Shown: in pieces, positions 61,103-64,000 of the stretch
How positions within the stretch are numbered: position 1 is the first letter of the stretch
Layout of the letters: each line of letters starts with the position of its first letter
Origin: Amphiscolops sp. MND2022
Taxonomy: Eukaryota
NCBI GenBank assembly: GCA_964187785.1
Contig: OZ076416.1
Coordinates: forward strand, 41,478,001-41,542,000
Reading direction: 5' to 3'
Length of the DNA: 64,000 nt
Made by a program: the position numbers and the translations under genes
Notes under the pieces: model-generated
What the model was told of the DNA's origin: nothing
Seen by the model: only the letters and a program-made list of their open reading frames with translations
Database searches by the model: none

Positions 61103-61107
61103 CTCGT

Positions 61108-61269
61108 TGTCGCGACCCCAGAGGCGTCACGGGACACATACAACGGGAGGAACGCCTGAAGAAGAGAGTGAGGAAATCAATCAGAACTGACCAGAATTAC
61201 CATAAACAAATCTAAAATAAAAAGGACAACAAACAGCTTGATATTATTTGAATAACACACAATCGTACA
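61108..61269 (-). repeat. Short 3' LTR (TGTACG...CGCGACA) of a separate minus-strand element, with PPT AGAGGAGGGGAA at 61270-61281
   Basis: TG...CA ends. The PPT resembles that of the 49-5653 Gypsy element. No coding body is visible in the window. Confidence 0.6.
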
Positions 61270-62172
61270 TTCCCCTCCTCTGTGCTGTAGCTAAAATACA
61301 TACATATGTAAATAATTAGATAATAATAGTAAATGCAGTATTTGTTTAGTCAACCTAGCCAGTGCGCTGACTGAAATTAATTCAATCAACGCGTTGACTG
61401 GGGATTCGCCTCAGCTGAAGTAGCAAATTTCATTAAGCCAATTCATATTGACCAATCAGATTCGAGCGCAGTTGTTACAAATTGAATAACTGAGTCAACA
61501 TCCCAGGCAACTTACCAGTCGACTGAAGCTGGGACGCTCGCTCAGTCGCACTACCTGAGTACTCAAATTATAATTAATCGATGCAATTTTCAAATGAGTT
61601 TGTCACAGCTTAAAAGAAGCTAAGTACCAAAAGAACACCTAATAAACGCCAATCAACGACATTTTGAGGTATCATAATATGTTTAATCCACTTTCCATCT
61701 GAGTCAATCTCCCAGGCAAGGCGCTATTTTTCCTTAATGAAACTACGGCCTGGACAGATGATTGAAAATAGTTAATTGAAATGCAACTTCCAACCACCTA
61801 AATTGCAAAGCCGTCCTTGTTGATTATAATATATAATAATATTGTGATAAAATAACCCCCCCGTGCTAACATTCACCTTCACATGTATTGTTCTGTTCAT
61901 GTATAATTGAGTCAACCGCCTGGTCAACCGGCTAGGCTACTCGAAATGAAACATGTTACCTGGCGTTCATCCAGGATTTTATTGTTCGGTTCAACTTAAA
62001 ATGCCATTTGACAGCCATAATTATCTGATTTAATGTAAATCAGTGCTGTTGAATTATTCATTTGAAGCTTTTCCCTTAATTTATTGGCAGTAAAATTTGG
62101 GATTATTCGATGACAATTTCACTTTCCTTTCCCGCTTTAGTAGCTAGGTTCATGAATTTCAGTGCCAACTTT

Positions 62173-62340
62173 GGTTCGGCGTCTTGAATTGGCGGGAAGC
62201 TGAGAAGAAAGCGAAGCGGAATTGGGACTTCGGCAGGAAGTTGATTCCCACTTTTCCTTAAAAGTGAGATGACGCCGAGAGCCGAGTCCCGAGGATGTGG
62301 ACCTGATTCAAAGTTTCCCGCCTCGGAAGGACGCCGAGCT
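62173..62340 (+). other. Multi-helix RNA secondary structure upstream of the gag ORF
   Basis: Four nested complementary helices containing several G-U pairs (see findings). Confidence 0.6.
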
Positions 62341-62661
62341 GAACAAGGTGTGAATTCACGCGCGGGATTTATTCCGCGTGTCTAGCGTAAAGTATAAATA
62401 CCTGAAGCGGGATAAGGAAAGGACCAGAATTAATTTCATGATTGTACTAACTACTTTGATCGCCTTTTCAAGTATTGTTTTGTAATTCTTTACCTTTGAT
62501 AATAGTTGATTTCACCCGTTTGTTGAAACCATTCGTCCGTAAATTTTGAACTTTTGGATATTATTTTGTGATCAACAAGCGTTGCTTGGGAATAGTTTAC
62601 CTGTAACTATTATCAGGGAAATACTCAATTCAATTTTCCAAGCAGGAATACTTTCTTGAAA

Positions 62662-64000
62662 ATGCCCGAAAAGTCACAGAAAAGAAAGTTAAGGAGTGAC
62701 CAAGGGACTAGCCAAGAGGAAGTTGAGAATTGTAATGTCTCAAATGACGAAAATGTTAGCCTCTCTGAACAAGATTTCGAAGATATCTCCAATAAAATAG
62801 AGAATCGTCTGTCCAAACGTTTAAGAGACACTGAATTCGGACAGAGAGAAATTCTGAGGTTGATCGAGAACTTAGCATCAAAAGTGGACAACCTGTCCAA
62901 TTCTGTCTCAGAACAGTGTAGTTCTGCTGTACATTTCGAACTGGAAACGGACCCGATAGAAAATACAGGAAACGAAAGTATTAATAGGAACGCGAGTTCC
63001 AACATGGTGACAGGAGTTTCAGCGAACCAGCAAGAAAGCGCCCACCAGAGATCATCAAGCCTGCCGCCTCCAAACCAGAGGTACCCTGATGACTTCATTG
63101 ACAAACTCTTACACTCGCTGCAAACGGCAACGACGCACAACACCGGAATACCCAGGCTGCCCAAAGCCATGTCCACCACGATGCCCACATTTGATGGAAA
63201 AACGGACAAGTTTGAACACTTTGAGGATCTATTTCAAACAAGTCTGAAAGTGTACCCGAATATCACAGAAGAGGAGAAAATTCATTATTTCCACTCTCTC
63301 CTGAGAGGCGAAGCACTACAAACGTTCAGGAACATGACCGACGCAACTCGAGAACACCTGAACGACATCCTCGCAGGCTTCCGCCGACGGTATGTCAGAC
63401 AACAGTCAGTAGCAACAGCACGCTGCAAATGGGAAAATCTGGCGTTCAACCCAAGCCAACAAACATTCCCAGACTTCCTAGAACAGTATCAAAAGTTAGC
63501 ACAAGAAGCTTACGGGGAGGACGCCCCTCGTTTCATAGAAACCTCCTTTTATGCTAAAATGCCCCCCCATCTCAAGAAGGTCCTAAACCAGGCCAGACTC
63601 GAGACAGAATCATACGAAACAATGGTCCAGCACTTGGAACGAGAAATCGAACTCAATGGACTCGCCACTACTGACAGCACATCAATAACCGGGATACACA
63701 ACATTGAACCCTCCCTACAACAACAACCACAACAGAATAAACCCCCCAAAACAACGGGAACATGCTTTGGGTGCGGCAATCCGGGACACCTACTACGAAA
63801 TTGCCGCAAAACCAATAGGGACAAACGATCCCAAAGAAACAATACCACAGCACAAGCCTCACCGTGCGAGACATGCGGCAAAATGAGCCACGAGACAAAG
63901 GACTGTTATTCAGGTGCGAATTGGGAAAACCGTCCCACGTGGTGGAAAACGCCCAAAACAACGCCACCCAACAACATCCCCATCGCCCAACATCCACAAA
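62662..64000 (+). CDS. gag: Intact Gypsy Gag with an LTR-encoded N-terminal extension, open to the window edge (at least 446 codons); absent from the ORF track
   Basis: Hand translation has no stop: MPEKSQKRKLRS...ASSN|MVTGV...PTFDGKTDKFEHFEDLF...CFGCGNPGHLLRNC...CETCGKMSHETKDC. Confidence 0.9.
   Translation, partial: MPEKSQKRKLRSDQGTSQEEVENCNVSNDENVSLSEQDFEDISNKIENRLSKRLRDTEFGQREILRLIENLASKVDNLSNSVSEQCSSAVHFELETDPIENTGNESINRNASSNMVTGVSANQQESAHQRSSSLPPPNQRYPDDFIDKLLHSLQTATTHNTGIPRLPKAMSTTMPTFDGKTDKFEHFEDLFQTSLKVYPNITEEEKIHYFHSLLRGEALQTFRNMTDATREHLNDILAGFRRRYVRQQSVATARCKWENLAFNPSQQTFPDFLEQYQKLAQEAYGEDAPRFIETSFYAKMPPHLKKVLNQARLETESYETMVQHLEREIELNGLATTDSTSITGIHNIEPSLQQQPQQNKPPKTTGTCFGCGNPGHLLRNCRKTNRDKRSQRNNTTAQASPCETCGKMSHETKDCYSGANWENRPTWWKTPKTTPPNNIPIAQHPQ
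63005..63017 (+). promoter_or_regulatory. PBS, tRNA-Leu-like (TGGTGACAGGAGT), lying inside the gag ORF
   Basis: Follows ...TTCCAACA directly. One mismatch to TGGTGTCAGGAGT, the complement of a tRNA-Leu 3' end. Confidence 0.7.

Follow-up and report, generated by a model that had tools for sequence, protein, structure and literature searches.

Can a long terminal repeat (LTR) encode the beginning of a structural protein? The question is raised by one end of a 64,000-nt stretch of DNA from Amphiscolops sp. MND2022 (assembly GCA_964187785.1, contig OZ076416.1, positions 41,478,001-41,542,000 of the forward strand, G000:C8:41478001-41542000; hereafter the window), which holds the 5' end of a recently inserted LTR retrotransposon of the Ty3/gypsy type. 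An initial annotation made from the letters alone had noted a stop-free open reading frame (ORF) that starts at 62662, deep in what looked like an LTR, and runs across the LTR end and a tRNA-Leu-like primer-binding site (PBS) into a Gag with two CCHC knuckles. The best overall explanation of the results below, mechanism included, is that the LTR encodes a real, selected N-terminal module of Gag, a reading that we hold with a probability of about 85%.

The LTR border and the gag frame

Comparing a 17.5-kb genomic stretch around the site with itself gave direct repeats of 1897 bp that are 99.79% identical, with four differences, and an element length of 15,446 bp for the window copy. The features at its 5' end that matter for the Gag start are as follows.

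61103..61107, + strand: 5' copy of the target-site duplication (TSD) CTCGT; its 3' counterpart adjoins the 3' LTR, beyond the window end (...acaCTCGT/TGT versus ACA/CTCGT)
61108..63004, + strand: 5' LTR, TGT...ACA, 1897 bp; near-identical repeat 13,549 bp downstream
62662..63003, + strand: Gag codons 1-114, inside the LTR; open in 30/30 family copies, no indel in 47 loci
63004..63006, + strand: in-frame ATG (Met115), its A being the final LTR base and its TG the first two bases of the PBS
63005..63017, + strand: PBS TGGTGACAGGAGT, read as (M)VTG(V); pairs at 13/13 positions with host tRNA-Leu(CAG), 3' end with CCA added
63007..64000, + strand: remainder of Gag (disordered linker, capsid (CA)-like helical core, two CCHC knuckles), which leaves the window and ends at L031:3083

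The LTR end proposed at 63004 proved exact. The 3' repeat includes the whole of 62662-63004, ends with CA at the same base, and is followed by the duplicated CTCGT; a purine-rich tract, AAGAAAGCCGGGGAC, lies directly 5' of the 3' LTR. Other family copies show the same arrangement, with partial matches that stop at the base equivalent to window 63004 and lie ~13.55 kb downstream of the full matches. The alternative that 62662-63004 is an internal leader outside the LTR, with gag starting at the usual place, is refuted by this repeat and TSD, and likewise in other copies and in two distant relatives (REL40 and REL59, described below), so that we attach practically no weight to it.

The ATG at 62662-62664 opens a frame that is stop-free past the window end and closes in the genome after 474 codons, which confirms the run across the junction into a Gag with two CCHC knuckles; a domain search of this Gag gave DUF1759 and zf-CCHC matches. 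The start lies 343 nt inside the LTR, and 114 codons precede, in the same frame, the ATG formed at the junction. That junction, ...TTCCAACA/TGGTGACAGGAGT at 63004/63005, is read A/TG GTG ACA GGA GT, i.e., Met-Val-Thr-Gly-Val, so the in-frame ATG giving MVTG that had been proposed for the LTR tip plus PBS is indeed there.

Selection on the LTR-encoded codons was examined in 47 loci, comprising 30 family copies (L001-L030) and 17 diverged subfamily 5' loci (L046-L062) having 61-89% amino acid identity; a protein search of the genome had given at least 150 scored matches among 2222 candidates, at identities from 100% to 61%. The ATG was kept and the 114 codons were open in all 30 family copies. 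The distance from ATG to PBS was 343 nt in 16/17 subfamily loci (those with an exact PBS) and in 29/30 family copies, and the stretch from the ATG to the LTR end was free of indels in all 47 loci; the adjoining upstream leader is indel-rich. Differences between loci were concentrated at third codon positions: the counts at positions 1/2/3 were 6/10/19 for the pair WIN-L062 (binomial p 0.0085), 10/9/34 for WIN-L058 (p 4.4e-06), 18/14/65 for WIN-L057 (p 1.3e-11), and 21/11/41 for L046-L047 (p 5.1e-05). Nei-Gojobori (NG86) omega was 0.08-0.11 in the Gag frame for pairs with unsaturated silent sites, and 0.6-1.7 in the other two frames. Judged by these comparisons, the segment is evolving as coding sequence under purifying selection and not as a chance open frame, and the initiation codon would be the one at 62662. 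Three observations had been named as telling against an LTR-encoded Gag start, namely a 3' LTR lacking the segment, a PBS that pairs with no host tRNA, and neutral evolution of the segment; all three were looked for and none was found, the values for the last being an omega of ~0.1, no indels, and a third-position excess.

A frame that is open but untranslated, kept by cis-acting RNA or DNA functions of the R-U5 region while Gag starts at Met115, would also leave the segment conserved. Retroelement R-U5 regions do carry packaging and reverse-transcription signals, and transitions dominate the changes in this block, as expected in structured RNA. Constraint on structure alone, however, does not predict a third-position excess or an omega of 0.1 in a single frame, nor a 342-nt segment wholly free of indels and stops next to a leader full of indels, nor an ATG-free leader ending at a conserved ATG, nor retention of a basic patch and a helix at 40% identity. 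We therefore regard this alternative as very improbable.

The PBS is that of a leucine tRNA, as had been proposed. Searched with a pattern of T-loop and acceptor 3' strand, the genome gave many copies of ...TTCGAATCCCACTCCTGTCA, one of them a complete tRNA-Leu(CAG) gene at L041:1439-1520 that ends ...CCCACTCCTGTCA followed by a T-run, and whose product would pair with all 13 PBS bases. Searching for additional pairing of tRNA-Leu(CAG) with the leader or the ORF gave chance-level matches of 7-8 nt only. The exact 13-nt PBS is present in 29/30 family copies (L004 is altered within the PBS and reads IVTG), and the same 13 bases occur in the two distant relatives. As a separate observation, one genome strand has 1120 copies of the 3' half of tRNA-Leu(CAG), including a long tandem array on C8 (G000:C8:35587100-35631059) with spacings of ~180-830 bp; elsewhere (e.g., L034:1440-1620) there are copies ending in CCA plus a common tail, which look like a tRNA-derived repeat family.

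The initial annotation had also raised the possibility of two Gag isoforms, a long one from 62662 and a short one from 63004 to which ribosomes would come by internal entry or leaky scanning. In favor of the short form, Met115 is in frame and does not vary, and in the window copy the bases at -3 and +4 of the junction ATG are A and G. The junction ATG is, however, a forced by-product of the CA that ends the LTR and the TGG of the PBS, so that its invariance says nothing about its use as a start codon, and the -3 base is C in the ...CACA/TGG of the two distant relatives. In the interval from one start to the other, every subfamily locus of this genome has 2-6 out-of-frame ATGs, REL59 has three in-frame and two out-of-frame ATGs, and REL40 has one out-of-frame ATG. 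Because of these intervening ATGs, leaky scanning to Met115 is unlikely, and the two-isoform idea is disfavored; we consider it improbable beside a single long Gag.

Among the scored matches of the genome protein search were many pairs ~13.5 kb apart, of which the 5' member was open for ~470-510 codons and the 3' member for ~125-215 codons. As had been anticipated, 3' LTR copies and partnerless matches, which may be solo LTRs, contain the 114 codons, followed by short read-out tails. One could then suppose that the 114-codon unit works alone, i.e., that 3' or solo LTRs express an N-terminal helix peptide that interferes with Gag assembly or regulates it, thereby controlling copy number. Consistent with this, the frames in these copies stay open, with tails of a few to ~100 codons (in the 3' LTR of the window element, the frame ends three codons past the LTR), and Ty1 p22 is known to be a truncated Gag that restricts its own element. 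On the other side, both LTRs derive from a single template, so that an open frame in a 3' LTR needs no selection of its own, and these frame counts pool 3' LTRs with any old solo LTRs. A stand-alone peptide is an unlikely proposition.

The Gag module and its relatives

The initial annotation had read a basic patch (a possible nuclear localisation signal, NLS), an acidic stretch and a coiled coil into the extension. This domain content was broadly borne out in so far as it concerns the patch, which is conserved to 40% identity, and the helix, which was recovered as residues 36-82 of an AlphaFold2 Gag model built with 37 aligned sequences as input; the heptad-like a/d pattern in the helix is partial and strongest in its C-terminal half. 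The two features are:

62680..62688, + strand: basic patch K7-R8-K9, which hardly varies among homologues with identities as low as 40%
62767..62907, + strand: predicted long alpha-helix, residues 36-82, AlphaFold2 pLDDT (predicted local distance difference test) 67-87

The model has residues 1-35 disordered (an acidic head with KRK), residues 36-82 as one 47-residue helix, residues 83-141 disordered, and a helical core at residues 143-332 followed by the knuckles. The KRK patch is a candidate for an NLS-like function, or for RNA or membrane binding. The amphipathic helix would probably serve self-association or partner binding. Both the LTR tip and the MVTG that the PBS encodes fall in the disordered linker (residues 83-141), which seems, on the modeled structure, to be the least costly place for sequence dictated by these signals. 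In all aligned homologues, Met115 is preceded by Asn or His, as expected if this codon has to end in C, directly before the A of the LTR tip.

A fold search of the Gag model against PDB returned no match at E ≤ 0.001; the weak top matches were nearly all retroviral capsid (Gag) chains, together with dArc1 and PNMA2. Pfam and Atlas searches did not identify the extension: the Atlas scores were ≤0.86, to unnamed clusters, one of them mostly Cnidaria. Two apparent similarities were set aside, a sub-threshold Pfam match to Pesticin (E = 0.057), taken as chance, and an Atlas similarity of 0.75-0.77 to the L1 ORF1 trimer coil, which is too low for use.

A database search with the whole Gag returned more than 1100 relatives. 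In an alignment of 13 of them, down to 40% identity, all keep the N-terminal extension, KRK at positions 7-9, and a similar helix region. MVTG is invariant in this alignment and nearly invariant, M115 included, in the 37-sequence alignment. Two distant relatives could be delimited as elements:

REL40: Gag identity 40%; ENA sample ERZ26859043; 15,543 bp; LTRs 1767/1770 bp, 98.9%; TSD AAAAT
REL59: Gag identity 59%; ENA sample ERZ25074608; ~15.2 kb; LTRs ~1915/1919 bp, 97.9%; TSD GCGCC

In both, the 5' LTR ends ...CACA directly before TGGTGACAGGAGT, and the Gag ATG lies inside the LTR, by 388 nt (129 codons) in REL40 and by 355 nt (118 codons) in REL59. Querying the window's genome with the N-terminus of REL40 found no match, so the REL40 family probably belongs to another host. 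On these sequence comparisons, the layout is a character of a clade and not a quirk of one family. One homologue (P0083, columns 140-160 of alignment A1) has the PBS-coded motif twice (PHMVTGV...PHMVTGV), which suggests a tandem duplication of the LTR-end/PBS junction within gag.

Leader, promoter, and the fast-evolving R-U5 block

Upstream of the Gag start, the LTR is divided into a conserved and a hypervariable part:

62092..62427, + strand: conserved U3-proximal promoter block, the best-conserved non-coding LTR stretch among subfamilies
62393-62400, + strand: TATA box TATAAATA, inside the promoter block
62424..62430, + strand: putative transcription start (U3/R boundary), 31-37 nt past the first T of the TATA box, at the switch from conserved to hypervariable sequence
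62431..62661, + strand: hypervariable 5' leader, with 13-59% divergence and indels, nearly without ATG

Conservation among subfamilies breaks off abruptly ~33 nt past the TATA box. In the leader from -215 to -1, 18 loci together have three ATG triplets, compared with 63 expected from shuffles, and the single leader ATG of the window copy, at 62438, is at the predicted transcription start. The leader is diverged by 40-59% between subfamilies, yet still ATG-poor, which fits the requirement that a scanning ribosome meet 62662 as its first AUG.

The leader and the LTR-coded codons (62426-63004) evolve faster than their flanks, as compared with L001-L030 and L046-L062. This R-U5 block is 2-8x faster than U3 and the Gag core. 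Divergence of the LTR-coded codons relative to the Gag core is 2-8x at third positions, in every distance class below saturation, and 3.5-6x at first and second positions, and omega is low in both. The borders of the fast block are sharp and coincide with the putative transcription start and the PBS. The pattern can be seen in the variable columns of the closest family (25 loci):

Leader: 36% variable columns; transitions:transversions 64:11
LTR-coded codons: 23% variable columns; transitions:transversions 68:9
U3-proximal block: 12% variable columns; transitions:transversions 32:11
Gag core: 8% variable columns; transitions:transversions 39:20

Possible causes of the fast block are recombination by inter-molecular first-strand transfer, wobble tolerance in structured RNA, or conflict over it. 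A more far-reaching proposal joins the last of these to the peptide idea above: the LTR would be a self-contained mini-gene, with promoter, ATG-free leader, start codon, and a helix module of 114-129 codons, 3' and solo LTRs would express a capsid-regulating peptide, and the fast, transition-rich R-U5 would reflect a nucleic-acid- or protein-based conflict between subfamilies or with the host. We rate this composite as a long shot, on a par with the stand-alone peptide itself.

The expression of an LTR-encoded Gag module can be pictured as follows. Transcription would start ~33 nt past the TATA box in the 5' LTR, near 62426, giving an mRNA with an ATG-free leader of ~235 nt. Scanning ribosomes would initiate at 62662, the first AUG and still 343 nt before the LTR end, then translate the remainder of the LTR, the integrase-recognised tip (...AACA), and the tRNA-Leu(CAG) PBS, read as Met-Val-Thr-Gly, and proceed into the capsid-like core and two zinc knuckles. 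The LTR-coded module would thus consist of the acidic disordered head with KRK, the amphipathic helix of ~47 residues, and the first part of a flexible linker, the last being where the cis-acting signals (LTR tip and PBS) sit and where the protein would tolerate dictated sequence. Pol would be made via a -1 frameshift at A AAA AAC. This slippery heptamer is found 74-80 bases past the window end (L031:3074-3080), 3 nt before the gag stop, and the C-terminal ...KN of Gag is retained in most homologues.

Several points weigh against this picture or limit what can be drawn from the data. The transcription start near 62426 is predicted from just two features, the TATA box and the conservation break, and the four public runs that hold the sequence are DNA-like, with even U3 coverage and very long contigs, and without transcript starts or ends. 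The only canonical AATAAA after the TATA box, at 62790, lies inside the ORF; it is present only in the closest subfamilies and is not conserved in sister subfamilies, and was therefore dropped as a poly(A) signal. The most diverged subfamilies have no canonical poly(A) signal from -420 to the LTR end. The subfamily loci are related by descent, so that the ATG-depletion and indel counts do not come from independent samples. A two-copy complex prediction for residues 30-90 scored 0.05, which speaks neither for nor against self-association. Lastly, an in-frame stop in pol at L031:3929-3931 splits pol into 286 + 1524 codons, so that the window copy is not itself autonomous; contigs from public DNA runs have another letter at the first base of this stop codon, and the break therefore appears to be private to the window copy or to a few copies.

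Within U3, contigs of the four DNA runs cover the stretch 62001-62400 (L031:1001-1400) ~10x as deeply as other parts of the element and show many internal joints there, so that this stretch is common to a far larger set of repeats. Several TTTCCCGC/GGCGGGAA motifs within it resemble E2F sites. Given its position 5' of the TATA box, the 3' LTR would be the only one from which it is transcribed.

Classification and relation to known systems

The Pol frame (-1 relative to gag) matches gag-asp_proteas at 55-142, RVT_1 at 454-618, RT_RNaseH at 711-818, Integrase_H2C2 at 1026-1081, and rve at 1102-1194. The order, protease (PR), reverse transcriptase (RT), RNase H, zinc-binding integrase N-domain, and integrase (IN) core, is that of gypsy elements. 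The element thus resembles Ty3/gypsy (Metaviridae) in its PR-RT-RNase H-IN order, RNase H and zinc-binding integrase domains of gypsy type, -1 frameshift, and 5-bp duplication. Bel/Pao membership was ruled out, as the domain search matched neither Peptidase_A17 nor DUF5641, which define that group, and the DUF1759 match of Gag, a family more usual in Bel/Pao, is the only feature in common. Membership in Ty1/copia (Pseudoviridae) was ruled out because the integrase follows RT and RNase H instead of lying upstream of RT.

Between pol and the 3' LTR lies an antisense ORF of 880 codons, 824 from the first Met (L033:804-3443, minus strand; G000:C8:41547804-41550443). It has no Pfam match, carries a zinc-finger-like CxxC...H......H motif, and by Atlas features resembles the hAT-transposase-derived FAM200, ZBED5, and GTF2IRD2 (scores 0.90-0.93). 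Antisense genes are at the same place in both distant relatives, and the 40% relative has a similar motif.

The nearest parallel in layout is yeast Ty1, whose RNA has a 53-nt 5' untranslated region and cis signals for translation, packaging, and priming that overlap GAG (PMC5454406). As in Ty1 and Ty2, the gag start of the present element is inside the 5' LTR and the tRNA PBS is within the gag coding region. In Ty1, only ~40 nt of GAG is in the LTR; here, by contrast, it is 343-388 nt of gag, encoding a predicted helix and a conserved patch. Ty1 also has the copia order and initiator tRNA-Met, unlike the gypsy order and tRNA-Leu(CAG) found here, and the likeness to Ty1 is one of layout, not of descent, the two lineages not being homologous. 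Described gypsy elements differ in that their gag starts downstream of the PBS. A search of open-access literature found no gypsy-type element with gag starting in the LTR, which does not prove that none exists.

Other comparisons are partial. Murine leukaemia virus glyco-Gag is likewise a Gag with an N-terminal extension, translated from a start codon farther upstream, in the 5' leader. Its start is a CUG downstream of the PBS, outside the LTR, and it is made beside normal Gag; here the start would be an AUG inside the LTR, and the extended form is probably the only one. The sag gene of mouse mammary tumour virus (MMTV), nef of human immunodeficiency virus (HIV), and the bel/bet overlaps of foamy virus also put coding sequence in the LTR, where it is duplicated at both ends. 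These are accessory genes, located in U3 and expressed from the 3' LTR side, unlike the present coding part, which comes after the promoter, in R-U5, and is the beginning of a structural gene. The CA-like core, whose weak best fold matches are nearly all to retroviral capsids, dArc1, and PNMA2, is reminiscent of Arc/dArc and PNMA; in mammalian Arc, too, a helical N-terminal domain precedes the capsid lobes.

There are practical consequences. Annotation pipelines that mask LTRs before calling gag truncate Gag proteins of this kind, and the sharp switch from conserved U3 to fast R-U5 may let sequence comparison alone predict transcript structure, if RNA mapping confirms it. For the biology of these elements, LTR and PBS are usually treated as non-coding, whereas here a gypsy-type clade in at least three assemblies encodes, in the presumably transcribed part of its LTR, a selected module of 114-129 residues, and its PBS is translated as MVTG. 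The LTR tip as integrase site, the PBS as the site of tRNA pairing, and the protein sequence overlap in one short stretch and so constrain one another, and every 3' LTR, as well as any solo LTR, would carry a promoter-equipped ORF.

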